A stretch of 64,000 bases of DNA from Okamejei kenojei (GCA_035221665.1 CM069147.1:20460001-20524000); one strand, 5' to 3'; shown: positions 10,896 through 52,615, numbered from the stretch's first letter. Numbers and translations: made by a program. The notes: generated by a model from the sequence alone, not told the origin.

Positions 10896-11033
10896 TCAGT
10901 TACACGTCTTTTTTGAAGTATTCACATCTGCGTACACCGTGTATTTGTTGTTCTTTTTGAATGCTGATGTTTTCTTTGGGTTGTGATGTTGCACAGTTGC
11001 GTAGGTCAGCTTGTCATGTCCTCTTCCTTTAGT
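10896..11033 (-). CDS. Gene A exon 7, terminal cytoplasmic exon with ITIM and ITSM-like motif
   Basis: Acceptor ttactctcgcag; TKGRGHDKLTYATVQHHNPKKTSAFKKNNKYTVYADVNTSKKTCN*. Confidence 0.85.
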   Translation of the reverse strand, partial: TKGRGHDKLTYATVQHHNPKKTSAFKKNNKYTVYADVNTSKKTCN

Positions 11034-14000
11034 CTGCGAGAGTAATTAATGATCGGCGATTAGGCAATCATTCAGTGACGAATTTGAGCATACTGATTTA
11101 AAATAAAATTTTATGCAACCCATCAGTTGTTATTTTCCCAATAGTATCGATTTGCACAGATTATTTTTTGGCTATACGTTTCTGCTTGATAATGAGTTTA
11201 AACCCGATGAGCCGTTCTTGTCCCACAAAATAATTATTTTATTTTTCTTTTATGTCAACTTCGATGTAATTAAGAAAGTTAGGAGAATTGGTGAATGCTC
11301 AAAATTGTATCCGCAGTACTAAATATTTGGCATAATACGATGCCCCTTTTAAAGTGTATTTGTGGGATTGGCGGGAATCCATTTCGCCTGTAGAGATCAA
11401 GAATTGGTTCGCAGACTGAAGCTACCAGTACCTCTCCAACAGACACCGCGGCTCACGGCTTCATCAGTGGCACCGAAATGCAATAGAATATAAACTGGTA
11501 CTACTTCTTATGGCTCTGCGTCCCCAGGTTTTGACACGAGTCCCCTATTCGGTGGATAATTTGAACGTCTTGTTTACTCTCTTTTCCCAGGTCATTGTCT
11601 GGCATTTGTATTTAGTTTCGCTCTGATTATGAGAACTGGGTAGGTTTGTGTGTTCCTAGCTTGCCACACCTTTGCTTCTTCACATACATTTACATTTTTA
11701 CATTTGAATTTAAACCCGAATAAGGAGACGAAAATTATATTTATGCTCTGATGTGCAGTGGGTGATATGTTTTACTTAAATAAAGATTTGCTATTGTGCA
11801 CTTATATTTTCCCTGCAGTTTGGAAAAACAACTACATTTGGAACAATGCTCATTTCATATCTTAATTGCGCTGTCCAATGGGTTTACCTGTGAAGAGACG
11901 ACATGCTGTTCTTCTTGTAGACCATTTGAAAATCCTTTGTTCTCGCTTAGATTCAGTGTAGCATAGGCAGCGGTATGTTCAATTGGTGCTTGTCTCACCT
12001 ATTAGAAAATTACATTTAATTTTGCGGGTGACCAGGCTTATATAGCTGATAGGGAACTCGAATTGTATCTGGGGCTGAAAATCGATGCACACGGGATATA
12101 GAGGAATAGATTAAACATAGAAACATAGAAACATAGAAATTAGGTGCAGGAGCCAGGCCATTCAGCCCTTCGAGCCTGCACCGTCATTCAATATGATCAT
12201 GGCTGATCATCCAACTGTATCCCGTACCTGTTCTCTCCATACCCTCTGATCCCCTTAGCCACAAGGGCCACATCCAACTCACTCTTAAATATAGCCAATG
12301 AACTGGCCTCAACTACCCTCTGTGGCAGAGAGTTCCAGAGACTCACCACTCTCTGTGTGAAGTCTTTCTCATCTCGGTCTTAAAGGATTTCCCCCCTTAT
12401 CCTTAAGCCTGTGACCCCTTGTGCTGGACTTCCCCAACATCGGGAACAATCTTCCTGTATCTAGCGAATTTTGTAAGTTTCCCCCTCTCAATCTCCTAAA
12501 TTCCAGAGAGTATAAACCGAGTCTTCCAGTCTCAAGACAGTACAAGGAATCAGTCTAGTGAACCTTCTCTGCACTCCCTCTAAATAATGTCCTTCCTCAG
12601 ATTTGGAGACCAAAACTGTACGCAATACTCCCAGGTGTGGTCTCACCAAGACCCTGTACAACTGAAGTAGAACCTCCCTGCTCCTGTAAAATCCTTCCCT
12701 TCTTAAAAAGAGGGGTTACATTTGCTACTCAGGACTACTCTCTCACTAATGCATCCACTATTTCCTGAGCTACTTCCTTAAGTACCTGGGATGCAGCCTA
12801 TCTGGCCCTGGGGATTTATCAATCTATTCAATGTACCCAACACCACTTCCCGACTGACCTGGATTTCACTCAATTCCTCCTTTGACCCACAGTTGCTATT
12901 TCCGGCAGATTATTTATGTCTTCCGTGAAGACATAGTTATTCAATTGGTCGCCATATCCTTGTTCCCCTGATTCACCTGTTTCTGACTTACATTTGTTTT
13001 AACTAACTCTTTCTCTTCACATATCTATAAAAACTTTTGCAGTCAGTTTTTATGTTCCCTGCCAGTTTTCTTATAATCTAATTAACATTTCACTTGCTGT
13101 CAATGATTACCAACGATGTCATCTCAAGGAAGGGGTGGACTATCCTAGCGCCACAATGAAGTTGATTTTTAAACAGCCGCTGAAAACAATCCTCCAAATG
13201 GAAACGTTTCCTCAACTCCTCTCATCTCTTTTTGTCACCGCTCATTTCCAGATTCCTACGCACTTCTATGCTTTCCGCATTGGCGACGCCCAAATTCCTT
13301 TCTCTACTGTAGCCTGACTTATTATTGCATTTAATGGCGGAACCAAAGATTGAAAGTCCTAGGCGATGCCCTCATGGGTTCCAAAAAGATAATGTGATCC
13401 TTAGCATTTCATGTTGCCTGATTTGCCATTGCAGAGTGGAGCTCATAGTCCCTTGTTAACTGGAATAGCAAAAACAGCTAAAAATAGGGACGGAGGTCCA
13501 GGGCCTATGCTGATCTGTTTGTGCTAGTAAATTATTTACAGCATGACTGAAGCTGGTACACTAATTCGTAAAAACACCATAAATCAGCTCAAGTAATGGC
13601 ATGGCATGTAAGGGGAAGGAAATCATAATAATTATTTAACAGCGACTATTTGTGCGTCTAATTAAAATATTGCTCACAATTTTGAGTTGTATACTTCAGG
13701 GAGAATTTCGAACACTGGACGAACTTGTTAAAGCATATTATTATGGAATCAATGATAAGTCACTATGGCCTTGGGAAAGTCAAAGGTAGTTCCATCATAC
13801 CAAATACCATTAAATGTTAATTTAAGAAATCTATTAAAATAAAAGCGTGCACCATATTAAGCATGCAGAAGCTATCACCCACGTTAAAGGAAACAAATAA
13901 TTTAGTTTTAATGTCGTTGCCAGAAAAATCTAGGTGTGGAAATTAAAATATGCACATCCTGGAAATCTGAGGTAAAACCAGAAAACATGCTGAAAATCGC

Positions 14001-17000
14001 AGCTGATCACGTTGTGTAAATAGAAACGCTGACATTTCCAAGCAATTGTAGGAGGGGTATTGAATCTGAAAATTAACTGTTTCTTTTTCCACAAATGCTG
14101 CCCGAACTGTGGTGATTTCCCAGATATTTCTGATTGAATCTCGATGCGAGATGACGACAGATTTATGTTTTAGGCCGCGTATCTGAACCAGCATGAACCA
14201 GCAGGCGAGTGTATTGGCGAACACATTTATCCTATCCTTGTTAGATTCTAATGTTTCTATCTGATTAAATATCGCTCTAATCGAAAAAAAAACATAAACT
14301 AACCAAAGAAATGCAAGGCAGCAGGCCTCGATTGCAACTGTCCAGTGGCTTTGACATTCACCAACACGAACTGATTTTTCCAAGCTCGTGACGGCGAACA
14401 TCACTCCAGCCTCCCGGACGACCTTGAACCATTGCAATTCACTCATCACTGCAACTGCAAAGACGACAGACGCAATCTCCCTGTTACTACAGAATCGTTA
14501 GAAATTTGGATAACACCTACCTGTATATCAGATTCTCGGCTTTCCAAACCATTATTCTAATCAAACTAATCTCCCAACGCCTGGATCAAAGACACAGCAA
14601 ATCGATCTTCAACTCGATCCCCACTTCCTGATCCACAGATTGCAGTCAATAAGTATAAACAACCAAACATCCTCCATGGAAATGCTGAACGTTAGGGCCT
14701 CCACAACACTGCTCTCCCGGCCATTTACTATATTCACTATACATTCACGACTCCGCCGCCAAATTGCGATTTAACTCGATTAACATGTTTGCACATGACA
14801 CCAACATGGTGGAGCAGTTCTCTAACCATGTCTAGACAGAGTTCAGGAAAGGGTAGAGAGTTTAGTGACACTGCATGAGGAAAACAATCTCTCCCTCAAT
14901 GTGAGCAAAACGAAGGAAATAGTTATTTAATTCAGGAAACGAGGTGAAGTACACGACCCAGTCTGCATCAATGGTGTTGATCGAGTTTCCTGGCGATAAA
15001 CATCACCAATGATGTCCAACCACATTCATGCTAACGCCATGAAAGCACGCCAAAGCCTCGAGCTTCCCAGAGGACCAAGGACTGCGGGCTGTCGGCATCA
15101 ACCAGGGAGTGGGGCTTGCAGGCTCGCCGTGCGCAGTGAGCGACGGCAGAGCAGCAGCCCCGACTCTACACCACAGCCTGCAAGGATACTGTGGCTGTCT
15201 AAATTAACCAGGTAGTGGGGCTTGCAGGGCAGCCCCGACTACCCGCAGCCCGCAAGGACTCTGTGGGCTGACGGTTTTACTTACACCGGGCAGGTTGGGC
15301 AGCTCGTTGACCCGATAGGGTCCGGGCTCACACTCGCCGTTCGCAGGCAGTGACGGCAGAGCGGCAGCCCGAATCTACACTGCAACCCGCAGGGTCACCA
15401 CGGGCTGACGGCAACGCTACCCGGAAGTTGGGCAAGCCCGTGGACCAGGCGGGTCCGGGCTCGGAGACTGCCATTCGCGGGCAGCGAAGGTAGAGCACGA
15501 GCTCCGATTCAACGCCGCAGGCCGCAGGTATACCGCGGACTAACGGCTATGCTACTCTATAGAGGTAGTAGACAGAGCCGGGGCCACGACTCTCACACAG
15601 GCGGGAGCCTTGCCGTTAGCGGCAGTCTATGTCCCGCATGAGAGTCTGGTCACCATTGGAGCTGGGGGGGGGGGGGGGGGGGGGGGAGAGAGAGAGAGTG
15701 CGCTCCTCCACCGGAAGCTCATAAAGACCCTCAGGTAATATATTAACCTTGAGTTGTTTAGCTTCTGTAGTAGACTTTGCTTACAGAAACAATGGATGGG
15801 AGACCAGAATGACAGCATCGAAGTATGCCTCCCAGGGCCATGGGACTTCGGATGGGAGTCAGCACCCATTATTCCCGGAACTGCCAGCAACACCGGCAGC
15901 GCCCGCTCTACGGGCCGGGATAAGAACGCGGAAACCGTGGAGCCCAGCGCAGTCAGGACCCGATTCTCCACCACGACTGGCCATGGAGCCGTAAAGTGGT
16001 AGGAGCACCGCGCAGGATCAGGGTAGGCAAGACCCTGACTCCCTACCACTGTCACCTAAGCATAGGGACAGTGGAGCAAAGGTGCGTAAGCGTGTGTTAT
16101 CCGCTTGGCGGCACGTTCTATTTTCCCAACTATGCAGGTCACCAGAGGGAGGACCAGGGGAAGAATCGCACAACAGTTGGTGAAGCCCCACTGTAGGAGC
16201 CGGGGTCGACTTTCCACCGGAGCAGCCACCTGTTCGCGGACCGGTGAAGGATTGAGGCCTGGGTCTGCATGCTCCGCATATGCGGTCGGCACAGACTCAC
16301 CACCGGGGGAGCCTGCCAGATCGCGGGCCGGTGTAGTCTCATCTCGGTCACCGCACCCCCCCTTTAGCGGCAGGACATGACCGAACGTCACCTTTGTCCC
16401 AAAGGAGAACACAGACTCACCACCGTGGGAGCCTGCCAGATTGCAGGCCAGTGTAGTCTCATCTCGGTCACCGCACCCCCCTTCAGCGGCAGGATGTGAC
16501 CGAACGTCGCCTTTGTCCCTAAGTAGGACAGGAGGCAAGCCCGCGCACACATCGGGCTACCACGTTTCGGCGGCCGGGACCGACTCATCACCGCTCATGT
16601 CTTATCAGACTAGTGGGCCGCCTCCGTCCGGAAGACGGCGGGCCAGCGGCAGGTCCGCGCAGGAGTCGCTTAGTCACGCAGAAGCGGCAGGCAGCGAAAT
16701 CCTGTCTAGGCACCCTTGTTATCACCTCGACGAGGTGCGTGGCGATGACAGAAGCCTCAGAGATTCTCCGGAACCTGCGGAAGTCAACTTGTCGTCCACA
16801 GATGCAGCGGCGGTCGCATGGCTCAGATGGAGCGCATGATGGAGCGTATCCTAGAGCACAAACTCTGCAGGTGGACCAGATGTCCTCCAGTCCTGGAGAC
16901 ATGCGGCAGGGCCACCCAGCATGTCCTGTCATTGGTGGGGAATGCCACGGATCAGCAGCTGGCTGACACGGAAGTAGGGTGGAGCAGGAACCTGTAGTAC

Positions 17001-20000
17001 CTGAGAAAACCCAGGAGGAGCTGCTGAAAGTGGTCTCCAAGTTCGCCCAGCCGAAGCACACAGGTCAGCCTTTTGCAGCCCAAATTAGGGGCTAGCATAG
17101 ACTACCTCACCACACCAGCTACAGGAACAGGTCCTTACCAAGGCGATCAACAAATACAAGGCCCAAACAACTGCAAATTGTTGAATGTACCGACAGTCAA
17201 CATGCCCATCTGGGGCAACAACAGTCCCGGGATAAGGGCACAGGATCTGAAGTTACAAAAGATCCTGAAATTGCTGACGTCGGTGATTACTGCCTTTGCC
17301 AGGTCGGTTGAAGGTATGGAAATGATGGCAGAGCAGGAGGATGCTTTTGTGATATTAGTCATGAAGTTAACGTTTACCAAAATATCGCCATTTAACCGAC
17401 TCCTAAACCTCATATTTTGTGGGGTTGTACAAGGCATCTGTGATGCCACCATCGAGACAGCTGTTCGGTGAGGACCTGCCCATACAGGTCAAGGACCTGG
17501 ATTAGGAGGTGGAGGCAGTTGGGTTGATAACCCACCTCCCTCCAGCAGGCCGGCAGTGCACAGGCAAACATCATATGCAAGACCTCGGGCCACCTGAAAG
17601 ACCAGTAAGGACCTACACATCAGCAGTACCTCAACACAATTCAACGGAACACCAGGAACCAGAACGACAGGCCCGCCGGTAGCCATGGAGGTAGGGGGTC
17701 TGGTTCTCTAGGAAGTGCTGCATGTATAACCTCATAAGTAGGAGAGAGGTTACATACATTCTGGGATACATGGGTGTGATTATCACTATCCCAGGGAACA
17801 AAGCAATAGACATTATAGAGGCATGTAACAGCCTTGCTTGCGCCAGGAAACCGACTATTAGACATGCTGCTAAGGTAATTGGTAAACTTGTAGCTACATA
17901 CTAGCTACATAATTGGGCCATTACAATATCAAAACTTGCAAAGAGCAAAATCTTGGCATTTTTTACGGGCCTATGCAGCCGCCAATCAAGGTCACAAGTA
18001 GTGGATAGCAATGTATTTTAACATTATTACATAAAACCATTAGTTTTGTTACAGACCGACGCAAGCACCAAGGGCTAACGAAATGCACACAAGTGGATGT
18101 TGAATCAATCCAAATATTTCCTAAAATGGTAGCCTAATATGCTAAAATGGTAGCCTAATATGGAACACCAGATATCGACCTCCTTGCATCCAGGTTGAAC
18201 CATTAGATATCATATGTGTCTCTTGAGAACCAGATCCTGGGGCAGTGGCGATGGATGAGTTCTGGCTACATTGGGGGAAATGGATTTCTATGCTTTCCCC
18301 ATTCTGCTTCATCAGTCAGGTGTTGCAGAAAATGCAACCAGGTTCTGCAACATAAAGGACCATGGACGTCATACGGCATTGTGCAGAGAGAGTCCACTAG
18401 GACGCAGTACCTCACCTACATAAGGATATGGGAGGTTCCTGTAGTTGGACCAAGACCACCTACATATCTGCTACGATCTCCAATGTGCTGGCATCCTCAC
18501 GGGTCGTCATATAATGAGTCCCTCAGTTATAGTACCATATACAGTGCCAGGAGTGCACTGTCATCCTACCTTGACATTGGAGTGGGATCTCACCAGCTGG
18601 TATCCAAACTATGAGGGATATGTTCTATCCATCCCTCCCCGACCACGATATTATATTACCTGAGATATAAGGGTAGTGTTGACCCGACTCAGGAGCTGGT
18701 CGCCTATGACGGACTTACCACTGGACCTACTCACCTTTAAATTGGTGATGGTAATGGCACTGAACACAGCACAATGGGTCCAGACTCTACAGGAATTAAA
18801 CCTGGATAGAATGATCGACCCATAATAAAGTAATTTCTTTATAAAAGAGTTGCTTAAACTACACAGACCTGCGACTACAGGTCTGAAAATGGCCATCAGG
18901 AATATGGAGGCGGATCTGTTATCAGCCAATGGAAACCCACGTCACAGGGTGATGATGCAGACTATCTCCAGATGGCTCAATGTGGTATTCGGTGCAGCAG
19001 GTAAGACACTAACCATTTAAAAATGTCATTCTACCAGGGCTGCATCCACATCAGCGGTGAGGACCATGGAGGTGTTCATGGATCATGTCCTCACAATAGC
19101 GGGCTGGGCCAGTGAAACTACATTTCAGCGATTTCATAACTAACCTGTGGCCACTCCCGAAACGTCTGCGGAGTCAGTTTTAAGTGCTGTTCCCTAAACG
19201 TTTGTCCCTGAGTTCAGGAGTTTATTGTTGTATTAACAATAATGTTATTATTTTTCAGCTTGTTCAAGTCTGAAATACGTTAACATACTTCCTCCATCAG
19301 TATTACGGCAGTGTGTGGGCATGGACGTGATCCAGGGCATGTAATCACAGAGCTTTGAAATCTTCACAAAGTCACTCACGTGACTCTGAAATGAAATAGT
19401 AAGATTAAACGAGAACTTACCAGTTTGAAGTTTGATCTTTATTTTATGAGGAGTTGTGATGAGGGATTTCGTGACCTCCGCTCCCAACCCTGTACTATAA
19501 GGTCAGCTGGTAAATGGAGTCTCTTCAATCTTACTATATTAGTTCATTTCTGGGTAGTTCTGTGATTCCACATCGCTGCTTTGAAGAAATTCGCGCATGC
19601 GTGCCTGGCGGGGTCTTCTTCACGAAATCCCTCATCGCAACTCCTCATAAAATAAAGATCAAACTTCAAACTGGTAAGTTCTCGTTTAATCTTACTATTT
19701 TGTGGGAAGCAGTTTAGATGCCATTGTAGGTCATATCCGGTTATATGACCCTTCGTTAAGGATTGAAGCGAAAACTGTAATTAACACGTTAAAGAACGGC
19801 TCAACAAAGCAAAGTAAATTCTCGACAAAGGTTCTTTTAATTTTAATTACCGTGCTTTGAAATTCAATATAACTTTTGCCTTACTCGTCAGCAACCCACA
19901 ATCTCTTCGTAGTGTGATATTTGATAGTTCTCACTATCTAAGATTTATTTTTAAGTGTTCCTGCCACCAGAACTAATAACAGGTCATATTTTCATCCTAA

Positions 20001-22982
20001 ACATCACCTTTCACTTTAGAATATAATAGGTTATGATCTGGCATGGAATTGTCAAAAGACGTTGAAGCCGATACAACAGGAATATTCAAATTATTATTGG
20101 ATGTATACTTGACGTAACCTGAAAAAGAAATCATGTTTTCATCCTGCCCTAGAGTATTCCACGATATTATGGAATAAATCCGATTTATAATATTTCTGCT
20201 ACGAATAATCCCTATTTTGAAACAAGAGGAGACATTTCACCTACCGGCTCCCTGTTCTGACGTATTCCTACAGAGGTTACGTTATGGCCTAGAGGAATGA
20301 AATAAAAATTAAATAAAACAACTTGAATTGTAAAGATTGATCTGTAGATTTTGACATTATTCTTCTCATATTAATCAAATTTACTGCAGAAAGTAAGAAC
20401 GATTGCATTTTTAAATATCCGATGGCGCACAACAGCACCAATTGTCACAAACTAGCATGCAACGCATCTTATACTCTTTCGCGATGTTGCGCCCACTGGA
20501 ATTAAATTTTAACTGACACTTTAAAATTTGGATGGTTTATAAGGAACCGTGTCCATGTCAAAACAGCAATGTAATATAAACATATGGAGATGATTGATTT
20601 CGCTTATTGCCACAAAGCCACAGTTGTTTTTTCTTCAAAATCGTAATCTTCCATTGCATTAATTATCCATCGCACTGGATGTTTGAAGAATTCCTTAATT
20701 TGAAAATATATGCATAGGTGATAATTGAATTAATCAAATTCCAATCTGAAATAATTCAATTTGAAGATCCATCTTATATTATCACAGATATATATCAAAA
20801 CCGCTTCAGAAATCTCTTTACCTGTCCATCTAAGTTATCTTTACTCCTCTGTGAGCAAACACCATTGACATATCCATTCTCATTTTAACCATATAAATGA
20901 TTATTATAAATTATCAAGATACTTACCGTACCATATCTTTAAACTGAGTCTTATCACGATTATAATCAGAACTAAAATTACCGATCCACCTACTGCGTAT
21001 ACGATAATCTGTTTGCGATCAATTCCTGGTGGATCAACAGAAAATTAAGAAACTGTAAAGAATTTATACATTTTAGAACAAATATACAAACGGTAGTCAA
21101 CAAAGTAAATCATTTCGTAGGTGCATTTTAATACCCACATCCGAAAGTTTGAAAGGTATATCAGAAGGCACCAGATGGAAGTTAGTAATGGAGTCCACAG
21201 GACAAACAAATGCAATTGTATTGTGCCCATGTGCGGAGAGCTGCTTACTAACGTTAAACGGAATTTAGGCTGAATCTTCATATATTTCACCAGACAGCGG
21301 ATATATGCATATGCCAGGACGTTTTTTTTCTCATTACAAACACTATATTAATTCAGTTGGTCAATACATCTCACACGGATTTCCTTACGAGAACCGATGA
21401 AGCACAACAGATTTCACAGAGCATGCAAGTGTTGCTTTCAAGCGAATAAATGCGAGTCACGTTTACCCCTTCCCTCCGTGTACGGAAAGCTGTCCAGTTA
21501 TTAATCTGATCGAATTTGATCGACCGCCCCAATATCATGTGTAACTGGCTCCAGTCTTACCTTGGCCCAGGGTGTAACTGAAACTGGCCGCCACCTTCAG
21601 GGAGATATGTGACACCAGACAGGTGTAAATATCTTTGCCCTCGCCAGGCTGCGTTATTTCCAAAAAACTAGAAGCCACAAACAATCCTTCTCCGCTCCGT
21701 CTTTTCACAGTTTCGATTCCAGTGCGAATTTCCTCGTTATTTCTTAGCCAGAATATTTCTACTTTCTCCGGATAAAAGTCGTCCGTCTTGCACACAAGTG
21801 TCCGTGGAGAGCCATGTCCTTCAGCAGGAACAATTTTCAAGGGAGTTGGGGGATCTTAATTTAAAAAAAAACATTTCTCGGGTGTTCGCTTTCCATTTTA
21901 TTGTAAATATTTACATTTTATCTCGCCACCGAGTCGTATTTCCCACGATCAAATTATTTAATATTTAAACTTCCCAGTTTGTCGTTAATTTATCGCGCCT
22001 TTCATAGCGGACAGCCGGACGAATTCCGCCAAGATACAAAGCGGGTGAATTTAAGGAGTGCCAACAGAATTTAAGGAGTTCCAAAATAAACTCTGTTCTG
22101 AATGGACGTTCCCCGGTATCGCGCCAAAGTGTTTGCCAGAAGCTTATTTATAAGTGGCCATATTCGGATCATTCATATATTGCAAAAAAATTGAGCCATG
22201 ATAATCGAAATATAACAGATTTGCATAGTGTGGTGACATGAAGCGGTTATACATGAAGATTAATGATTAATCTCGTTAGCTCTTTAAGTAGTATATGAAC
22301 TAAATCTCCTCAACCTGGTCAAAAAGACCCATTTCAAAATTTAATCACTATACTCCGACCTGCCTCGAGCTAACCAATTATGAGGTGTTTGCGCAGTAAT
22401 CAACCAGAACCAGAACCAGAACCAAATATGGGTTTGAACTGCCGATCACAACCATTTACCAGCACGTGAACCAAAGGCTGGGACATATTTCTCGCGCATT
22501 GAATGCTAATATTGAAACATTGTGGAATCTATTACAAGCAATCTACGAGCGCACTTATTCAATATCAGTGTGTAGGAAAGAACTGCAGATGCTGGTTTAA
22601 ACCGAACATATGCTGGAGTAACTCAACGGGCGTACAGGCAACTTTCTCTTCGGAGGAAGGAATGGGTGACGTTTCTAATCGAGGTTTGAAGAAGGGTCTC
22701 GACCCCAAACGCCACTCATTCCTTCTACCCAGAGATGCTGCCTGCCCCGCTGAGTTACTCCAGCATTTCGTGTCTCTATACAAATCAGTTCCATCTGTTG
22801 TGCCAACTTGGCAACAGTGAATCGACAACGCTAGATCGGCGTTAATGATGATAGCTTGCAGAAGCCAAATGAGGGAAAAGAACAAGCTCTGTTTCTCGCT
22901 GTGCAGATTCTATTCATTTAGGTCCTATATTTCGTATTAACGCGAACTCCTTCCGTTCGAGCTGCAGTCGGTGCCTAACTGA

Positions 22983-23018
<36 letters not shown>

Positions 23019-27133: not shown

Positions 27134-27225
27134 AAAGAAGGGTTTCGACCCGAAACGTCACCCATTCCTTCTCCCCAGAGACGCTACCTGTTCCGCTGTG
27201 TTACTCCAGCATTTTGTGTCTACCT
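27134..27225 (+). mobile_element. Penelope-type terminal repeat fragment
   Basis: aagaagggtttcgacccgaaacgtcacccattccttct...ttactccagcattttgtgtct. Confidence 0.6.
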
Positions 27226-27992: not shown

Positions 27993-28109
27993 ATATTTAT
28001 GGGCCTATCGAAGAGACTCGCCAAAAACTGCTATCGTATCTTCCTCCACCACCCCTGGTAACGCGTTCCAGGCACTTTCGGCGTCAAAAACCGGCCCAGC
28101 ATAACTCTA

Positions 28110-36644: not shown

Positions 36645-36686
<42 letters not shown>
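33173..36686. repeat. Near-identical tandem duplication of a ~1.75 kb composite repeat block
   Basis: 33173-34913 repeated at 34917-36686; identical ORF translations at 34315 and 36058; both units end in poly-G. Confidence 0.9.
34405..34900 (-). mobile_element. Penelope-like element 3' end (GIY-YIG C-terminus remnant plus terminal repeat); duplicated at ~36148-36645
   Basis: Minus strand resembles the EEQHLIFRLGSLQPSGM-type terminus at 59551-59720, followed by ttgaagaacggtttcgacccgaaatgtcac. Confidence 0.7.
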
Positions 36687-36980
36687 GCGGGGTTAAAGTG
36701 TTTAGTAATGGTAGATCTGGTAGGTTTATGCGGAGGTTTATGCTTCGCTACTAAACTGCTGGAAATCGATTTCCTGTGGTCATTAGGAATAGTACTTAGC
36801 GAAGAGAATTTGCAGATAATTGTCCTGATCAATTTTGTGGATAGTTTATTTTGAAATAAATTATCCAGATTTACAGGTATGCGGCCTGCTGCTTGAGTCG
36901 GTGGCACAAATTCATGGAAATTCAGGTGTCAGGAGTTATGGGGAGAAGGCAGGAGAATGGAGTTAGGAAGGAGAGATCAA

Positions 36981-41959: not shown

Positions 41960-42190
41960 TGCCATTGCTGGTATCTTGAGAAAAACAGCAAAGCGGTGGA
42001 GGAACTCAGCAGGCGTGGCAGCATCTGTGGATGGAATGGACAGACGACGTTTCAGATGAGAACCCTTCTTCAGACTGATGGAATAGTGTGGATTAAGCTG
42101 GAAGATAACTGGGGCGGGACAAAACCTATCCAGTGATAGGTGATGCAGATGATGGGTGAAATAGTCATGTTTAGAAGTGGCGGTTGTACA
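41960..42190 (-). mobile_element. Penelope-type terminal repeat with hammerhead-like core
   Basis: Minus strand cagtCTGAAGAagggttctcatctGAAAcgtc at 42073-42046. Confidence 0.55.
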
Positions 42191-44155
42191 TGTAAGAAGG
42201 GAAGGGTGTGTGTGTCGTGGGGTGGGGGTGGGGGTGGGGGTGGGGGTGGGGGTGGGGGGGGGGGGGGGGAGGGGGGGTGGATCTCCGAACACGAGCGCTC
42301 AGTCCGCCATGGTCTGCTGGTACTTCCAGTCACTAAATGCTGATGCACGTACTGATTTACTTTACTTTTTACGTGGAACATATGAAGTTACCAACAATAA
42401 TGTCTGGGCAAATGGAACCATCAGTCCAAAACTTACATCTTCTGTTCCATTGGAGGTGGGTATGCCACTGAGGCGTTTTGCTCCGCCAGGCTATCATCAC
42501 ACTGACTAATTCCATTTCATTACAAGTGTATTCAATGGTGGCGCACCTGATTGGTTGATGGGTCTCTTCGGATTTCCTTCTCTAGTTTATGTTAACGTTA
42601 GTGTATTTCGAAACAAATGAGAGAAACAAAGGCTCAGATGCATTGAAAAAACATGGAATTTAATTAAGAGAAAATATATTGGTTGAACAACTGAATAATC
42701 GGCGTTTTTTTAATCAGTCATTAAGCGACATGTTATCACGAACGGACGTGGCCATAGTTTCTTCACAAGGCACCAGCGAAATTATTCACATTTGAGAACA
42801 GAAGAAAAATAAACGAACACGATTTTTAAAATTTACTACAAATGGAAACTGGCACAATCATCCCTGCCTTCAGAAATGGAAGCGTTGGATGCTTGTTAGA
42901 TGATGGCCACTTGCAGCAAAACATTGCCTCAATGAAGATGAAAACAACCTGTAGCTCCCACGATTGTTACCATGGGAGTACGTAGTTACCTCATTAGCTT
43001 GGCTGGCAGAAAGTAGCAATATTTCGGCCTGCACTTATTCACAGTCTACAGCTTCGATTCCCAGCTTCGCTCCTTCTTTTAAACATTTCCATCTGCATAA
43101 GGTACATGTTCCTCTTTCTGGTTAAATGTTACTGCTGATTGGAGTTGAGTAACTGCAAACCGACATAATACAACGTAGAATTTAAAATCTTTAGTCTGTG
43201 AAAGGAATTTATATTGGTCATTAGTCAATTACCCTCTGGTGCCACACAGAATTTGAAACAAAATACTACCAGTCTCCAAGAGAATGTATATACATTTCAG
43301 GATTCATACAAATCCATGAGTGCACCTACGTGCAAACAAATATGGAATTGCTATCAGTAATCTTCAATGATACACGGGCACGGGAATAAAAGTGCTTTAC
43401 TACAAGTTGGGGAACTGCTTCTAATGAGTTGAGAAAACATTAGTTTATCCGAAAACTTTATTGCGCGCTCCTGCTGGGATGGCTTATTTTGTCTTTTAGT
43501 TTCGTTTAGTTTAGTTTAGTTTAGTTAGATATCTTCCAGTGATCTGTTAGTAGCAAATTGTTATCAGATTTTCTTTTGCCATTCTTCATTAATTTTCTTT
43601 CCCTGATTTCACTTAGTGCTGATCTTCGGTGCTACTAATCATTATTGGCCCACAGAACAACATTAGTTTTCTTCGCTATCGCCGATCATTTATATGAACG
43701 TAAATGGAATCTGCTTAAGGGGGCAGACAAATAGTAGAATTAAAGTAGCAAACATTTAATACTAAGTACTAAAAATGCAGATAATGCAAAATAGAATTTT
43801 AAGATTCGCTGATGGGCCGTTTAGCCTATATTCTCCATGTGGTAAATTTTACGTTGAACCTGCCTGCACAATTGTCAGGAAATCAACGGTCGTTAGGAAA
43901 TAGAGTTGATCATATTGTACTTTGGCTGAAATAATCCAACATTGCATACTCTTCTTATCGAATCCACACACAAGATTAGAAGTTGTTCAACCAGAGCTGA
44001 ACACACTTCTCGGCATCTGAATAGAATGGTATCTGTCTTGTGCTTCTTGTGCGCGGCGGTGGAGAGATTGATGAAAACAGGGCCGTGATGTGAACGCTCT
44101 TACTTTGACCCCATTGCATAGTTGGTAGATTGAAAGTGCTATCACTGCACCCTGC

Positions 44156-44305: not shown

Positions 44306-45510
44306 CTTTTAATTCACCAATTGTATTTAGTTGTATCACTATAAAAGATGGACCCGGAAATGTTAATTTGATTGCTGGAAAGTGCTAAACAGGTTAAAGT
44401 GAGTACGCAATCTGTTGTTAATTCTGGCAATCTGGATTAGCAATCGTCGCAATTAATGAAATGCCCAAAATATCAGACGATTTACACTTTTAAGGTTATG
44501 AGATCAAATGTTTCTGAGATGTATGTGAAATTAACTTTCATTATCACAATGTGGAGTCGTTAAATATATATTCACGCCAATCAACGTATAACTGCAAAAG
44601 TTCCCCCATTGATATCCACCCGCTACCTTCTCTCGTGTTTACAACCCTGATGCACTCATTAATGGATGCTGAAAGTATTCACCGGGAACTTTAAAATAGT
44701 CATTGTGGGTATTATGGAAATAAAGACTTAACGCGGATAGAATAGTTTATTTCTCTCCTAAGACATTCTAAGATTCTAGGGATTAACACGTGCCCTTTGC
44801 TGACATGTAATCCTTCTTTTAGACACTCTAAAGTCTAAGCTCTAAAAGTTTAAAGTAAAATACACTCTGTTTGAAAAAATATGAAGTTATTCACCCTGTC
44901 GGATTTGCCTGTATGACTTGCTGCCCATGAGGGTTGTACTTTGATGCCAATCGATATTGTCGCCCAAAGTAAGAAGTCGCCCGGGCACCATATGGATGTT
45001 TTATGCATAACCCATTGTTATAAGGTTGTGTTTTATACATTACCTTCTCATCCTCTTAAAGGTGTGAAACACAATGGAATGTATCATTGAATGCAACAAA
45101 ATGTTATAGGCCGCAGCTGTCATGTTATACCTTAAAATCACAATGGAAATCAAACTGGGGATGGCTATCAGAGTAGTAGTGACCTAAAACCTATTTTGCG
45201 CCAACACAATCAAGATCTGCGCACAATTGTTTCCTGTAAAGATTTGGAACTGCGATGATGGTAACAAGTTGCAAATCATGAACAATAACCGATGGATAAA
45301 ACAAAAAGATACGATGATTGAAATATTGACTGAAATATGGGAAGATGTAAGATTTATATCTTGAGATTTATTTTTGTCATTGTTAATGGTCAACTTTATT
45401 CTCAATTGTTTTATTGGTTTGCAATCGAATACCATTAACTGCCCTTGTTTTTTTTTTAACCACAAATATGATTAAGACAGAGAATACTGTAAAATGTATA
45501 TGATTCTCAC

Positions 45511-45609
45511 CATTTTGTGCCTTTACTTGGAGTCTTATCAAGATAATGGCCAAAACTAAAATTGCCAAGACACCCACTGCGCATCCGATAATTAGATTTT
45601 TATCTGCGT
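45511..45609 (-). CDS. Gene B exon 4, transmembrane
   Basis: tttctcttgatccataag|...|gtgaga; DADKNLIIGCAVGVLAILVLAIILIRLQVKAQN. Confidence 0.9.
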
Positions 45610-48600
45610 CTTATGGATCAAGAGAAACAGGGAAAATGTGAACGATATAACATATTGAAAGATATACACATTTAGGAATTTAGCGATAACAAAGAACACG
45701 TCAATGGTTTTTGAGCTTCTTGCTCCATGATTGATTAGTGATTGTGAAACATTGATCTCTCATTACAAATAAACACGGGTCGTTTCTAGCCATTGTTCCC
45801 GTATTTAAATTCTAATCAGTTTACACATATACACCCGCTCTTGGCTGCAAGTACTGACAATCTTACCTGCTTTGACGATGTAGCTGAGAGCTGTTGGCAC
45901 CTCAAGGGAAACATGAGATACCAAGCAGGTGTAAACGGCGTCGCCCCAAGCAAGTTTAATTTCTTCCAATAAACTGGAAACCTCATACAATCCCTCTGTG
46001 CTTCTATTTTTTACCGTTTCTATTCCGGTCAGAATTTCTTCGTTATTTCTCCGCCAGGAGATTTCTATTTTTTCCGGATAAAAGCTCGCCGTTTTACACA
46101 CAAGTTTCCGAGACTGCGATGAAGTTCCTTTAACCGGAATGATTTTCAACGGAGTGGGGAGAGCTTTAACAGAGAGACAAATATATTATGCATTTTGTTC
46201 CCTTGGAATGGACGTTTACTCGTTTGTCTCACTTGAGAATTGTATCACAATGTTATTATGACGAGTTAACTGCGCTATTGTTTGAACCGTTTTAAGTTAT
46301 CCTATTGTTATAAACTGCTTTCCCGTCGGCAGGAAAGTGACGGGGTAAATTAAAAGCACGAAGAATGCGAGTCTACGAACTAGTGACCTAGAAAGACGCC
46401 GCTGCTCGAAATAGGAGTATAAGATTTAATGCGGGTGAAATTGGTATTAGACATTTGTGTTTCCCTCAAAACGAGGTGGTTTGTCGAGCTGTTTTAATTT
46501 CAGATATTGTCACGGGAACAAAATGAAATTGTCACAGCTGTCTATAATCAAGTGGTAAGATGCGGATGAATGCTGGGTCCTTGCGAGTGTTTGGGCAGTA
46601 CTGTATTTTACTTCGGAGTCACGTGAGTGACTACATGAAGAACCCCGCCTCACGCTGGCAAACGGCATTACGTCGACGCTGACGGCGGAAGGAGGAGCTG
46701 CAGTAAGGAGCAGCTCCTCGCAGCGGTCGGAACGGCCCCGCAGGTAAGTGCAGCAAAGTCGGGATGTTTTTTAACGTACGCTGGGTGGGTCCAGCAGTAA
46801 AAATAAAGTAAAATAAAAAGTCAGAGTCACGTTTAAAGTGCTGTTTAGCACAGATTAAATGAAAGAAATGGAGAAATCGGCAAAGAAAATTCGCGGGTAA
46901 AGAGAGCTTCCCGGGGTGAAAATAAAAATACGGGAAAAAGCTAGTGCGGATCCGGTTCCGATACCGGTGGCCGCTGATATACCCGTTAGTGAGTTCTAGA
47001 TTCTCCAGAAGTTATAACCACGGAGAGAAATGCTCCTAAAAATGTAAAAGAAATCTGAGAGGCCCGTGGTTCTGATGACTCTGATACTGAAAGTCCTCCA
47101 GATAATTAAACTATATGGGACTAATAATGGAGCATATGGAGAAAGTTCTCCAAAAATTATGAGACTAGGGGTCACAGTACCCAGAAGGTTCCCAAAAAAG
47201 CCCTGAGGGGTTTAATTATTCTGATATGGCTGTGGGCCTAATTGGGAGTTGGAACTCCGGACCCAGGATTTGGGCCGAAGGAAGTCTCATGGGATGAAAT
47301 CCCAATTGATTTAGGGCTGCAGAAGGCAGACCCTGCTGATGGTGATTTGCATTTGAAAACACACCACAAAAATAAAAGAAAGGCCAAATGTGCCTGAGAT
47401 AGCAAAATAATTTGCTATATATGAAGGAAGTGGTGAGGCTATGGAAGAAAACCTAGCAGCCAACATTAATATATGGGATCTCACCAACTTCATGATTCTG
47501 TGATGATTGAAACATCAGAATTATAAACGCACAGGAAATTGTGCCTCATTGAAAGTGCCTACGGTTTATCCGTTGATTTGGGCATCCATAACCCCAAATA
47601 TGAGAGCTTAAGAAGTGAGGTTCAAAAATCCTCACAAATTATTCTGCTGCCATTATGGCTTTTGGGGAGATGGATAAGTTTAAAAATTATTATACTGCAC
47701 AGCCCAATACTTACCCGTATTCGGGGAAAAGGAGACCACCACGCTCATATGGAGAGGTATTAAAGACTTGTTCTATCTTTAAAGAAACTGCGGATTAATC
47801 TCCAGTTGGAGGGAGATTACAAAAGTTTTATAAAGACTGGCTTACTATTATTTCTGATCGGTTTATTTTTACAAGCAGTTTCAGGAACCACTATTACATT
47901 TAAAGAAGGGGTTAATCCTCCAGTACAGATAAACCTGCCTATGCTTTCGTGTTTACTGCAATTGGAAAAGCAGAGATTAATGTGGAAATTGACAAATTAT
48001 CTGAAAAGGGGTTATTGAAAAAACTTATGAACACGAGCATCAATTGTGTCTAAGATATTTCAAAAGACATAAAAAGATGGTGATTGCAGAATTATTCTGG
48101 ACCTTACAGATCTAAATAAGTGGTAGAATACAAATTTTTAAATGGAAAATATTTAATATCAGCAGGTTGTTATATGGCTACGATTGATTTGGGAAAAAAC
48201 GCCTATTATTCTGTACCAATACATCAGTTTCTGGAGGTACTTAAAATTTAATTGGCTGGGACAATTTATGGCAGTTAAAGCTTTGCCAAATGGATTGAGT
48301 TCAGCTTCTAGGCTCTTTACTAAACTGTTGAAACCAGTTTTAGCCCAATTAAGAGTACAAAAACACATCGTTATGGCTTATCTCGATGACATTCTAATCA
48401 TTTATGGCAATCAAGAGTCAGCTGAGAACTAGTTTCAGTACAAAAGCTTTGTTAAAGCTAGGTAGAATTGATTCATCCAATTAAATTCCAGCTGCAGCCA
48501 GCACAATCAATTAACTATTTGGAGTTTGTAATTAACTCAGAAACTATGTTAATACTTTACCAACAAAGATAAAGTTGATGATTTTGGTGACTTGTAATAA

Positions 48601-51600
48601 TCTCATTCACAAACTGATCCTTCCATCCGAAAAAATAGCGAAAACTATTGGTAAACTAGTAGCAGCTTTTCCTGCAGTAGAATTTGGTCCATTACATTAT
48701 CAAAATCTTCAAAGGGACAAAATAAGAGCTCTCAAAGAGAGGGCAGGCCACTTTGATAGGCCTATGCAATTAACAAAAGAAGTTTTGTTGGAATTACCAT
48801 GGTGGGTTAAAAATATCCCACAAGCTGCTAAAAACATTCTGATTAAACAGCCTGAAATTGTTTATAAACAGATGCTAATGCTCTCGGATGGGGGGGGGGT
48901 AATAGATTCAGCCTCCAGTTGTGGAGGTAGATGGAAAGTCCAAGAAGAAACGTTTCTTCAAACTTATGGTATTAACTATTTAGAGTTATTAGTTGCTTTC
49001 TATAGTCTTAAAGCATATTGCTGTTCAAAAAAGGGTCTACATGTATTAATACAGTTAGACAATAAAACGGCTGTTGCATATATTAATCACATGGGGGAGT
49101 CAGATCAGTATCATGTGATTGTCTGGTCAATGAAATATGGCAATGGTGTATTGATCGCCAAATTTGGATTTCAGCAAACTACATTCCAGGTAAAGACAAT
49201 GTGGTGGCAGATAAAAGATCAAGGATATTTAAAGATAACACAGAATGGATGCTTAATCCAGCAATATTTAAGAATATTGTAAACTCAATTTGGTTTACCA
49301 GATATTGATTTGTTTGCATCAAGGCTTAATCATCAATTGCCTAAATATGTGTCTTGGGAACACGATCCAGATGCAGTAGCAGTAGATGCTTTTTCATTGA
49401 ACTGGGGGAATATGTTCTTTTATGCTTTTCCACCTTTTGCTTTGGTTCAGCAATGTCTGAAGGAATAGAACAAGATTCTGCCACAGGATTGTTGGTAGTT
49501 CCAAATTGGCCAACACAACCTTGGTTCCCATTAATGCTGAATATGATTAAAGAACCATATATGTCAATTCCTAACTGTAGTGATATTTTGATTAATCCAG
49601 TAACCAAAGAAATTTATGCATTATATGCATATATGAATTTATTAATCTGCAGGTTTTGACCAGACCACTACAGGAGCTGGGATTGTCGGACAAAACTATG
49701 GAGGTTATAGTCGCATCATGGCGAGATAACACACAAAAACAATATATGACACATGTTTAGAAATGGGATGAATTTTGCACACAGTCAAATATTTCTTATG
49801 ATACGGTGAATATTGCATGTTTGATATTGTGATACTGTGATATTGCATGGAAAATGTATTGGAGCTCCTTGCTAAATTGCATTTTGAGCAACATTTAAGT
49901 TACAGTGCTACTAACACTGCACGCAGTGCCTTATCATCTTATTTAGGACTTATGTCTGACCAGAAATCAATTGGATCACATCCACTAATATCTAGATTCA
50001 TGAAAGGAATCTTTAATATTAATCCACCCAAACCTAGATACACAGAGATTTGGGATGTGAGAATTGTACTTACCTTAATTAGATAGTGGACTCCAATTGA
50101 AAGATTGTCATTGGAAAGATTAACATTCAAATTAATAATGTTAATATCATTGGTTTCAGCTCAAAGAGTGCAAACTTTACAAATGTTGCGTTTAGACTGT
50201 ATGCATGTGACTACAGATAACATTGTGTTCTATGTTTACGATCTGATCAAACAAAGCAGACCAGGGAGATCTGGAGCTAAGGTAACCTTTCAAGCTTATC
50301 CTATTTTGATCCTACTTTGTGTGTGGTTAAACATTTGAATCAATATGTTAAAGTTACTGAAACTCTTCGAGGAAATGAAAAAAAGTTGATGATTACGCAT
50401 AAAAAGCCACACACAAAAGCTTCAGTTCAAACTATCTCAAAATGGTTGAAACAGGTGTTGCTTTTAGCAGGAGTAGACACTGATGTGTTCAAATCTCACT
50501 CCACCAGGGCTGCAGCTGCGTCCGCGGCGAAGGTGCGGGACGTACCACTCGAGCGTATTTTAAAAATCGCAGGGTGGAGTAAAGAAGAAACTTTTTCAAA
50601 GTTCTACAATAAACCTGTTCACACTATGACAAGCTTTGGCCACGCGGTGTTGGGATCAATATAATTACCTGCTTTGTATACTATTGATTACTATAACCAA
50701 GTTATGTAGTCACTTATATCTTTTATCACTTGTAATCATTCCCTCGGATATAAGGAGGGTTATTATATGTTCTTTAAACCATTAAAAAGTTAATTATGGA
50801 AAGAACTAATATTAGTCTGGTTTCTCATGTATGTATTTACTTAGCCGGACTGTCGTACTAATTAAATACTACGACATAAAAAAACACAGAAAAGCTTTAA
50901 AATCTTCACGTAGTCACTCACGTGACTCCGAAGTAAAATAGTAAGATTAAACGAGAATTTACCAGTTCGAAGTTTGATCGTTATTTTATGAGGAGTTACG
51001 ATGAGGGATTACGTGCCCTCCACTCCCACCCTCATAAAATAAATGATCAATCTGGTAGTTCTAAGTCTTTTATGAGCCTTACTATGTTACTTCGGCTATT
51101 TGGTGTTCTGTGTTTTTCATGCCGCTGCTTTGAAGTATGCCATTTGCCAGCGTGAGGCCGGGTTCTTCACGTAATCCCTCATCGTAACTCCTCATAAAAT
51201 AACGATCAAACTTCGAACTGGTAAATTCTCGTTTAGTCTTACTATTTTAATGCGCGGGATGGAGGTTTACGAGGGTACAAATTTCATCAGGATAAATGTT
51301 TCCCGAACGCGAAGGGAGTACTGGAATATTTCTCAATGTGGGGAAGTGGCATACTGGAAGTTAAGCGTCGCTAAATAAATAATCATACGCACGGAAGTGG
51401 GGGAACTGAACATGCCCCTTCTCTCATGTTGGAAGAACTCAGCGAATTGGCCAGCATCTGTGGAGGCATTGGACGGGTGACATTTCCGGTCGGGACCTTT
51501 CTTTGGAAAAAAGTTGTTCCAGTGCTTTTTTTTAGCTCCAGGATAAAAACAACTTTCGTTTCTCGCTTGAAAATTACCACACACATCTGCTCAGTATGAA

Positions 51601-52615
51601 CATTTGCGAAAATATTCCATTCGCAATTTGAAGCCGCGTATCCAAAAAGATGCAAATCCAATTCTAACAACATTTCAAAATCAGCACTTCGGATTTAAAG
51701 CAGATTCGAATATTATCGCGATAATTCTAGACAGTGACACAGAATTGTGTAATGTGAGTCGACAGGGCTACGTCAACTTTGATGTAAGAATGACCAGGAG
51801 AAAAACGAAGAGGCAAGCAGGACAAACTACTTTCCACGCGACGGATTCAACCCGACCTGTTGAATATTCCCTGTATCTGCTGGTTTACCTGAGTCTTGCA
51901 CCCTCTGTATCAATTTATTTCCGAGGTACAAATTGAATTCGGCGTCGGATAGCTCTTATTGAGTACTAATATTTTCATTTTCTCGCGATCACTGAGTTTT
52001 ATCTCCATGGTATGGGGATGATAACATGGACTTCCACTGTAAGGATACTTACCGAATACAGATAGCAGCGTGCCACTTCCATTTCCGATAGGTTGCTGCT
52101 GCTGTTTGATTTGACAATAATACTTCCCGGAGTCTGCGACACCGACATTCAGCAGAGTAAACGAACCGCTGCCCTTGTTTATATGAAATTGCTTTCTGCT
52201 GTCTGGCCATATGAATGCATTCTCGCTCTCTCTCCACCAGTAGACGTCAGGAATAACTTGTAATATGTGATATTTGCAGAAAATGGAAACATTTCCACCG
52301 ACGGCTTCATGCAAAACAATCGGGAATTGTTCCACTTTGCTTGACGATACTATGGCATCTGCCAAAAAAAAGGAAGATCACGGGAAGTTGTTGTTTAAGG
52401 TGATAAAATGCAAAAATAAAAAGCAAGGGACATAAAATACAGAAATAAAATTAAGATCCAGCATAAATCGAATTCGACAGGGATTACAATCAAGTGTGTA
52501 GTGCCTGATCAAGGTGACATTTTCCAAAGTAAGATTTTGTATTCAGGAAAATAAGCGTACCTTGCCAAACTATAATCAGGAAAGCCATGTAGCTAACTGC
52601 AACCTCCGCAGACAT
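45511..52615 (-). CDS. Gene B: paralogous VJ-C1-TM IgSF receptor (leader to TM confident, tail unresolved)
   Basis: Exons 52615-52561, 52358-52053, 46163-45867, 45609-45511; all GT-AG, phase 1; exon sizes match gene A (55/306/297 vs 294/99). Confidence 0.88.
45867..46163 (-). CDS. Gene B exon 3, C1-set Ig domain
   Basis: LVCKTASFYPEKIEISW...YTCLVSHVSL; 297 nt; donor gtaaga. Confidence 0.95.
46606..51248 (+). mobile_element. Structurally complete but degenerate DIRS1-like retrotransposon in gene B V-C1 intron
   Basis: RT (MAYLDD), RNase H (NYLELL, LDNKTAVAYIN), methyltransferase-like (PNWPTQPWFP), tyrosine recombinase (HSTRAAA, GWS); inverted termini; ICR ~50903-51015 complementary to both ends; TTT(T) junctions, no TSD. 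Confidence 0.95.
52053..52358 (-). CDS. Gene B exon 2, germline-joined VJ-type V domain
   Basis: ttttttggcag|...|gtaagt; 306 nt; SIFC, DVYWW, DSGKYYC, IGNGSGTLLSV. Confidence 0.95.
52561..52615 (-). CDS. Gene B exon 1, signal peptide
   Basis: ATG at 52615; MSAEVAVSYMAFLIIVWQ; 55 nt, phase 1, donor gtacgc. Confidence 0.85.

Follow-up and report, generated by a model that had tools for sequence, protein, structure and literature searches.

Two tandem VJ-C1 receptor genes in Okamejei kenojei and the chondrichthyan-wide family to which they belong

The stretch of DNA analysed here, called the window below, comprises 64,000 nucleotides of the Okamejei kenojei genome (GCA_035221665.1 CM069147.1:20460001-20524000). 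Reading of the DNA and exon-by-exon translation give two paralogous genes, both on the minus strand, in its interval 10896-52615 (Table 1). Gene 1 occupies 24445..10896 in seven exons, which encode a leader, an immunoglobulin (Ig) V domain, a C1-set domain, a stalk with a transmembrane (TM) helix, and a cytoplasmic tail in three exons (cyt1 to cyt3) that carries an ITIM (immunoreceptor tyrosine-based inhibitory motif) and an ITSM (immunoreceptor tyrosine-based switch motif). Gene 2, at 52615..~45511, repeats the ectodomain and TM plan of gene 1. Both are real and intact-looking immune-receptor genes of a cartilaginous fish.

Table 1. Exons of the two receptor genes, tail-exon remnants and retroelement copies in the window (positions counted from its first letter; a slash marks a splice junction)
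Feature	Position	Strand	Remarks
Gene 1 leader exon	24445..24391	-	MSANVTVWSMALLVILTQ; ATG, open frame, GT donor; phase 1 at end
Gene 1 V exon	24195..23890	-	306 nt; J-like G strand NGSGSQVTV; AG acceptor, GT donor; phase 1 in and out
Gene 1 C1-set exon	21854..21561	-	FYPEKVEIFW ... YTCLVSHIS; canonical splice sites
Gene 1 stalk/TM exon	21025..20927	-	IDRKQIIVYAVGGSVILVLIIIVIRLSLKIWY; helix without charged residue
Gene 1 cyt1 exon	20288..20245	-	44 nt, HNVTSVGIRQNREP; acceptor tctag/, donor CCG/gtaggt; phase 1 to phase 0
Gene 1 cyt2 exon	11998..11888	-	VRQAPIEHTAAYATLNLSENKG...SSQ; YxxL tyrosine; splice sites read
Gene 1 cyt3, last coding exon	11033..10896	-	ITIM LTYATV, ITSM TVYADV, stop codon
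Gene 2 leader exon	52615..52561	-	MSAEVAVSYMAFLIIVWQ
Gene 2 V exon	52358..52053	-	306 nt; J-like strand NGSGTLLSV
Gene 2 C1-set exon	46163..45867	-	C1-set by Pfam
Gene 2 stalk/TM exon	45609..45511	-	ADKNLIIGCAVGVLAILVLAIILIRLQVKAQN; helix without charged residue; phase 1 at end
Possible gene 2 cyt2 remnant, weak	44961..44872	-	in-frame stop, no tyrosine, no GT donor; one weak tblastn match
Probable remnant of last tail exon of gene 2	43195..43079	-	acceptor cacag/ACTAAAG intact, 38 codons open; DNA alignment to gene 1 exon
DIRS-like retroelement with tyrosine recombinase	47500..51250	+	fills much of gene 2 V-C1 intron; blastn/tblastx
Second DIRS-like copy	about 17100-19700		in the 8.2-kb cyt1-cyt2 intron of gene 1

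Every acceptor in the two genes is AG and every donor GT, and no exon is interrupted in its own phase. Phase 1 holds at the leader/V, V/C1, C1/TM and TM/cyt1 junctions, and phase 0 for the last two exons of gene 1. The gene 1 exons total 1047 nt, that is 348 codons plus the stop. Exon cyt1 was located by probing with the tails of homologues, and it is kept in the model because the frame of the next exon and the 348-codon total require it. Base 10896 is the final base of the gene 1 stop codon, and base 52615 is the A of the gene 2 ATG. The four Ig exons of the two genes are visible in the list of open reading frames (ORFs) of the window. When the two gene regions are compared by blastn and tblastx, homology appears at the leader, at V, at C1 and at a fourth short exon, the leaders being homologous by tblastx and the TM exons by blastn. 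All searches, here and below, were run with single exons or database proteins as queries.

The domain assignments are supported by profiles and by motifs. Pfam V-set matches 23873-24283 in gene 1 (E=3e-8) and 51910-52365 in gene 2 (E=4e-7), and Pfam C1-set matches 21535-21840 (E=7e-15) and 45805-46149 (E=2e-12). The C1-set (PF07654) scores are 55.5 and 47.8 bits against a curated cut-off of 21, and the V-set matches are likewise above their cut-offs. The exon translations show IGNGSG, FYPEK and YTCLVSH(I/V)S; since FYPEK..W and YTCLVSH stand in both C1 exons, the FYP...W and YxCxVxH signature of C1-set domains accompanies a score above threshold in both genes. The conserved structural residues (Cys, Trp, FYP, YTCxVSH) have remained in place. 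Only 53 residues separate the two cysteines of the short V domain, and Pfam nearly ties V-set and I-set for it. An AlphaFold (AF2) model of a close relative from the same clade shows a confident V plus C1 ectodomain and a TM helix, and lacks a C'-C'' hairpin. Between the two genes the V domains are 50% and the C1 domains 60% identical only; therefore they are old paralogues and not a recent tandem duplicate.

Can either gene rearrange? In both, the J-like strand lies within the single 306-nt V exon and runs straight into the splice donor (NGSGSQVTVF/gt and NGSGTLLSVF/gt). Both V exons match the pattern GxG[T/S]xLxV, with Asn in the place of the canonical Phe of FGxG. Thus V and J-like strand form one germline-joined, VJ-type unit, and there is no recombination signal sequence (RSS) beside separate V and J segments as in rearranging Ig and T cell receptor (TCR) genes. 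The heptamer CACAGTG does not occur within 10896-52615; the whole window has 2 copies (4856 and 57008) against 7.6 expected, and no heptamer-spacer-nonamer arrangement. The initial annotation had proposed two sets of leader, single-exon V with a J-like strand, C1 and TM exons in phase, a product of 348 residues for one gene, and the absence of recombination signals. All of this holds when compared with the canonical splice sites, the Pfam matches, the exon total and the heptamer search, and its limits for the interval are exact to the base.

The two genes differ in their tails. That of gene 1 contains AAYATL (a YxxL tyrosine), a canonical ITIM, LTYATV, at 11009-10992, and a canonical ITSM, TVYADV, at 10940-10923. 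The ITIM and ITSM tyrosines are 23 residues apart, a spacing that suits tandem-SH2 phosphatases, as for PD-1 and SIRP-alpha. By tblastn, cyt2 is 49-54% identical to Heterodontus and Mobula tails, and cyt3 is 59% identical to Mobula tails with both motifs aligned (E about 1e-13). By motif only, gene 1 thus has the ITIM equipment of an alpha-type SIRP; these motifs are missing from gene 2. The TM helix of gene 2, LIIGCAVGVLAILVLAIILI, is uncharged, so it lacks the basic residue with which paired receptors engage an adaptor bearing an ITAM (immunoreceptor tyrosine-based activation motif), and gene 2 is more like a tail-less form. No counterpart of cyt1 was found for gene 2. In the probable remnant of its last tail exon, the ITIM LTYATV has become CRFAVT and the ITSM TVYADV has become VPYADG; six family tails match this remnant colinearly, each match being weak alone (E 0.25-0.8, tblastn). 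The DNA alignment of the possible cyt2 remnant is unconvincing.

What are the relatives of these genes? A HMMER search with the gene 1 V exon, which was exhaustive rather than word-indexed and covered 1.84 billion cluster representatives, returned giant multi-Ig proteins such as titin together with single-V proteins 37-60% identical. All relatives looked up through their clusters, at that identity or weaker, come from a shark, a ray or a chimaera; the gene 1 V domain is 53-60% identical to the V domains of this chondrichthyan family. The relatives share one plan, namely a leader, a V domain with GNG(S/T)G, a C1 domain from VPPTPLKI onward with FYP and YTCxVSH, and a TM segment. Proteins of this plan at 43-73% identity are present in all three of these groups. 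Many relatives have tail motifs of the kinds YAxLNL, (I/V)YSQTK, LTYAALxL and TxYAx(V/I), some have short tails, and some (P0161, P0114, P0163) have two C1 matches, that is V-C1-C1. In five database proteins (P0053, P0177, P0075, P0092, P0132) a short tail goes with a conserved acidic motif, IIVDH, where the TM segment has its inner end, a charge opposite to that of classical activating receptors. When 31 family proteins were compared with the window by tblastn, only the exons of Table 1 were matched, the four Ig exons at E=1e-23 to 1e-37, which is far beyond chance; therefore the window holds exactly two family genes.

RefSeq models of the family exist for Mobula, Hypanus, Hemitrygon, Narcine, Pristis, Amblyraja, Leucoraja, Heterodontus, Heptranchias, Scyliorhinus, Chiloscyllium, Hemiscyllium, Stegostoma, Carcharodon, Mustelus and Pristiophorus, and for the chimaera Callorhinchus. 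There are dozens of these homologous models, and their automatic names are mutually inconsistent. The commonest is tyrosine-protein phosphatase non-receptor type substrate 1-like, which means SIRP-alpha-like; others are signal-regulatory protein beta-1-like, NCR3 ligand 1-like, immunoglobulin lambda-1 light chain-like, T cell receptor beta chain-like, tapasin-related protein-like, CD276, PD-L1-like, class II histocompatibility antigen-like and uncharacterized. The family is Chondrichthyes-wide and already in public annotation under misleading automatic names. The initial annotation had seen in the two genes non-rearranging VJ-C1-TM paralogues of a diversified cartilaginous-fish family, which the relatives and the trees described below confirm. 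It had added that the family was possibly not yet described. As far as databases go, this gives way to the dozens of RefSeq models; it stands to the extent that the literature searched, with partial coverage so that an earlier description is possible, yielded no description of a chondrichthyan VJ-C1 ITIM receptor family.

Word-indexed searches, for which a family profile, a chimaera tail region and a V-C1-C1 skate member served as queries, gave no relative outside the Chondrichthyes; since such protein searches need shared 5-residue words, the null for bony vertebrates is not proof of absence. Three reptile proteins, P0101, P0046 and P0106 (turtle, gecko, worm-lizard), have 2-6 tandem V domains 32-35% identical to the window V. 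Some of them have GxG strands, one has an ITIM/ITSM tail (VTYADLHF, VVYAEV) and all lack a C1 domain; they are annotated automatically as titin-like, pIgR-like or obscurin-like. As to genomic position, nearly all family members of one species lie on a single chromosome-sized contig. In the white shark a family homologue lies on a 193.5-Mb contig, and the MHC (major histocompatibility complex) of that species has been reported on chromosome 19 (PMC10751288), which, by inference only, speaks against MHC linkage there.

The position of the two genes within the family was examined with separate maximum-likelihood trees for V (52 sequences) and C1 (53 sequences), built by quick search with SH-aLRT support from family members only and left unrooted. 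The two trees agree that both window genes belong to a batoid-only clade (SH-aLRT 99 in the C1 tree), and that they fall into two different old lineages of this ray clade. By this placement the sequence most likely comes from a batoid. The neighbours of gene 1 are ITIM-bearing proteins of Mobula and Hypanus, its C1 domain being 65% identical to that of Mobula XP_062923465. The neighbours of gene 2 are short-tailed proteins of Pristis (Pristis pectinata, P0179) and Hemitrygon (P0185). With P0179 it shares 67% identity in V and 73% in C1, and the stalk/TM motif DADK(I/N)LIIGCAVGG is near-identical in all three. The old loss of the tail that the trees imply for the gene 2 lineage is at odds with the still recognisable last-exon remnant. 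Its survival may be due to gene conversion, to a tail loss that happened independently, or to some remaining use of the exon.

Outside the Chondrichthyes, a profile of 16 family members was searched against all sequences of the Protein Data Bank (PDB), with bits given per domain. The kappa light chain scores 71.2 bits over V-C, the lambda light chain 70.3 bits over part of V plus C, SIRP-alpha (2wng) 61.5 bits over V-C1 in one stretch and 42.6 bits in its third domain, and UrIg2 (9dmx) 55.4 bits over V-C1 and 38.5 bits in C3. With 127 bits in total UrIg2 is the second best match. The window C1 exon alone is nearest to the C domains of Ig lambda, IgM and UrIg2. For the V exons alone there is no solved structure of a near relative; they best match the I-set domains of Robo, titin and contactin, V-NAR, light chains and, weakly, CD79a, and neither NKp30 nor SIRP is among the best 60 PDB matches of either V exon. 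Among structure searches, Foldseek with the two-domain model ranked antibody light chains first, and VIA-align gave MHC class II C1, B7-H6, butyrophilins, IgNAR V, CD79b and SIRP-gamma tied at Z 13.9-15.5. These searches confirm the V plus C1 fold and do not separate families; the ESM Atlas gave generic C1-set/Ig clusters only. Because Ig light chains, SIRP-alpha and UrIg2 score about equally, the profile favours neither SIRP nor an antigen-receptor precursor lineage as the place of the family.

We consider it very probable that the interval contains two tandem, same-strand members of an old, chondrichthyan-wide family of type-I receptors with a VJ-type V domain and one C1 domain, gene 1 being a complete inhibitory member and gene 2 a short-tailed one. 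How might they work? Supposing that gene 1 is expressed, be it in innate lymphocytes of NK type, as the initial annotation had proposed, or in other cells, its V domain would bind a ligand, and Src-family phosphorylation of the tail tyrosines would follow. The phosphorylated LTYATV and TVYADV would recruit the tandem-SH2 phosphatases SHP-1/SHP-2, so that cell activation would be damped. SIRP-alpha and PD-1 work in this way, by phosphatase recruitment to phosphorylated ITIM/ITSM. Gene 2 would be a short-tailed, non-inhibitory counterpart, acting as a decoy, an adhesion molecule or a receptor signalling through a partner, like SIRP-gamma. By analogy, the two are most likely a SIRP-alpha/gamma-like pair, inhibitory plus short-tailed. 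In manner of working the likeness is clearest to SIRP, with VJ on C1 domain(s), an ITIM form and tail-less relatives in one cluster.

Several observations weigh against this reading. The first tail tyrosine of gene 1 (AAYATL) is not a canonical ITIM, and at the second tyrosine, which is conserved in relatives (IIYSQT), gene 1 has Ser. Having no charged TM residue, gene 2 is not a classical activating partner. What remains of its tail exons is decayed; its 3' end is undefined, a direct splice to 43195 would make the reading end in ...KAQND and a stop, and it may be partly a pseudogene. The sequence does not single out SIRP, for Ig kappa and lambda reach 70-71 bits against 61.5 for SIRP-alpha, and the structural matches to B7-H6, butyrophilins, MHC II C1, CD79b and SIRP-gamma lie within about 1.5 Z of one another. 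Finally, three same-species runs on 20100-24500 cover only the repeat at 22450-22890 and no exon, which does not mean that expression is absent; each run holds essentially none of the sampled words. The repeat concerned is SINE-like (short interspersed element) and occurs also at about 10119-10181, at 41990-42075 and elsewhere, with a summed depth above 1e5 in same-species contig sets. It shows many opposite-strand joints, and its reading ...FLLPRDA.C.AELLQHFVS... recurs in several ORFs of the window.

There is a further question, whether the likeness to SIRP reflects descent. The family might be the true set of chondrichthyan orthologues or co-orthologues of tetrapod SIRP, the window genes then being a ray SIRP-alpha and a SIRP-gamma-type gene in which one C1 domain was lost. 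Among the alternatives this one survives best; it is a serious possibility, though on balance a doubtful one. Many members bear the automatic names of tyrosine-protein phosphatase non-receptor type substrate 1-like or signal-regulatory protein beta-1-like from NCBI, the best PDB matches that are not antibodies include SIRP-alpha (2wng) and SIRP-gamma (4i2x), whose V-C1 aligns colinearly, and the family has V-C1-C1 members as well as long ITIM and short-tailed forms. The order of four tail tyrosines in long members would also resemble xxYAxLNL, TxYAxxQ, LTYAxLD, xEYAxV, the order in human SIRP-alpha. However, light chains outscore SIRP-alpha with the family profile, identity to SIRP is only about 19-22%, many unrelated receptors of the inhibitory kind have similar ITIM/ITSM tails, only one C1 domain is present in the window genes, and none of the word-indexed searches, limited as they were by that index, returned a bony-vertebrate protein.

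Are the two genes alive at all? One or both could be unexpressed pseudogenes in a transposon-rich region, gene 2 being a dying copy with a decayed tail. We hold this unlikely. The tail exons of gene 2 have indeed decayed, having acquired a stop and lost a donor and tyrosines, DIRS elements and long interspersed elements (LINEs) crowd the introns, and no transcript evidence was found in the three same-species runs, which cover only a repeat. Against this, the four ectodomain and TM exons of gene 2 and the seven exons of gene 1 all have open frames and undamaged splice sites, and the conserved Cys, Trp, FYP and YTCxVSH are in place. Moreover, Pristis and Hemitrygon still have short-tailed relatives of gene 2 in which its TM motif recurs, and this suggests that the short-tailed type has been maintained.

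A third proposal sees in the genes a still living branch of the non-rearranging VJ-C1-TM lineage ancestral to Ig and TCR, sister to the rearranging antigen receptors or to UrIg, and dimeric. The exon plan of leader, VJ, C1 and TM with phase 1 throughout, and the J-like strand with its GxG, are what it would lead one to expect; in the PDB the profile matches Ig light chains and UrIg2 best, and Foldseek puts light chains first. But Ig, UrIg2 and SIRP score alike, which leaves no affinity specific to the antigen-receptor lineage. With 53 residues between the cysteines the V domain is a short one; it has no C'-C'' hairpin in the model, and is by phmmer no closer to Ig V than to I-set domains of Robo, titin and NCAM; the stalk has no cysteine for an interchain bond. 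We judge the proposal quite unlikely. The initial annotation had linked the genes to the pre-RAG ancestor of antigen receptors; of this link the resemblance in architecture remains, and that only, the family profile being no nearer to Ig/TCR than to SIRP. Similarly slim chances are given to an uncharacterised, Chondrichthyes-wide lineage, not orthologous to SIRP and standing beside the Ig/TCR/UrIg stem, that is, a membrane-bound, ITIM-signalling pre-RAG relic expanded into inhibitory and tail-less forms.

Much less likely again, the genes could encode ligands of the B7/butyrophilin type with a V-C ectodomain, for example B7-H6 (NCR3LG1), and not receptors. Several relatives are auto-named NCR3LG1-like, CD276 or PD-L1-like, and the V-C1 part of B7-H6 is a top structural match (Z 15.4), a value tied with those of many unrelated two-Ig proteins. 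Pfam strongly favours C1-set over CD80-like or BTN C2-set models, no B7 protein is among the best sequence matches, and the J-like GxG strand and the ITIM plus ITSM tail are features of receptors; with C1-set preferred, receptor-type features present and the structural Z not specific, B7 membership is rejected. That the genes are germline-joined Ig light-chain clusters as in sharks is hardly conceivable, for although they share the leader, VJ and C layout without RSS and light chains are the top profile matches, TM and cytoplasmic exons follow the C exon, the homologues have the same membrane-bound layout, identity is about 20%, the V domain lacks the light-chain length and CDR2 region, and the family has conserved motifs of its own.

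The surroundings of the genes are rich in transposons. The DIRS-like element in gene 2 has a Pfam Phage_integrase match at 50317-50664, and both DIRS-like copies carry internal inverted repeats. As they lie in different introns of gene 1 and gene 2, they are independent insertions. Between the receptor genes, at 28100-32100 (+), there is a nearly complete LINE, whose ORF1 (28530-29057) is GDSL-esterase-like; its AP-endonuclease ORF lies at 29082-30035 and its reverse transcriptase at 30637-31749. Other fragments of LINE reverse transcriptase (RVT_1) lie at 37000-41000 (-) and 61600-63500 (+). The region 33400-36900 is a tandem duplication of about 1.745 kb, in which ORF 33419-33667 equals 35166-35414 and ORF 34315-34599 equals 36058-36342; after it comes a long simple repeat, rich in G/C, with poly-Gly or poly-Pro ORFs. 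A G/C-skewed low-complexity block at 3400-5100, with long Pro-rich and Gly-rich ORFs on opposite strands, adjoins a run of N at 5338-5530. On either side of the receptor pair there is transposon debris, and no other host gene was detected there.

Why does such a family matter? To our knowledge, C1-set domains are confined to a handful of adaptive-immunity molecules, and a single-exon VJ joined to C1 is the proposed starting material of Ig and TCR. All three chondrichthyan groups have a large membrane-bound VJ-C1 receptor family, with SIRP-type inhibitory tails and tail-less and acidic-TM variants. It is a concrete, testable gene set for the age of the SIRP-type inhibitory checkpoint, and a candidate set for the non-rearranging VJ-C1 genes nearest to the antigen-receptor ancestor. 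It is also a curation problem for RefSeq, where one family goes under at least eight unrelated automatic names.

How does the family compare with known V-C1 molecules? B7-H6 (NCR3LG1) has a V-C1 ectodomain (Z 15.4 over 188 residues, rmsd 3.4) but is a ligand that lacks this pairing of an ITIM/ITSM tail with a J-like strand, and many other proteins tie with its Z. NKp30 (NCR3) has a germline VJ domain with a GxG strand. It is V-only, whereas the window genes carry C1; membership is rejected on the C1 exon and on the absence of NKp30 from the best 60 PDB matches of the V exons. PRARP (Fu et al. 2019, J Immunol 202:1992) is cited in the available text of PMC10751288 and PMC11599192. UrIg and UrIg2 are non-rearranging elasmobranch Ig genes with several C domains, UrIg being linked to the MHC and UrIg2 to the Ig/TCR complex as described (PMC12227049). 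Like the window genes they are elasmobranch genes with a single-exon VJ domain followed by C1-type domains. However, the UrIg2 construct (9dmx) has four domains, V-C1-C2-C3, and forms a disulfide-linked dimer, part of which is IgG-Fc-like, while the window genes are V-C1-TM, with an ITIM/ITSM tail in gene 1, and belong to a large multigene family. UrIg/UrIg2 membership is rejected, since one C exon is followed directly by TM and tail exons.

Ig light chains, of which germline-joined clusters are known in sharks (PMC2193156), are likewise V(J)-C1 two-domain chains with a leader, VJ and C exon plan, and they have the best profile scores and the top Foldseek ranks. They differ in having no TM segment or tail, in an identity of about 20% and in a V domain longer than that of the family. 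With SIRP (SIRP-alpha/SHPS-1, -beta, -gamma) the window genes share a V domain that does not rearrange, has a J-like G strand and is joined to one or more C1-set domains, and the occurrence of long ITIM inhibitory forms beside short-tailed forms in one cluster; the family also includes V-C1-C1 members, and the SIRP-alpha V-C1 match is colinear. The differences are one C1 domain after the N-terminal V against two in SIRP, a short V domain (53 residues between cysteines), an identity of about 20%, and, with respect to SIRP-beta, the lack of a charged TM residue in gene 2. Judged by its sequences, therefore, the family is a distinct V-C1 lineage, about equally far from Ig light chains, SIRP and UrIg.

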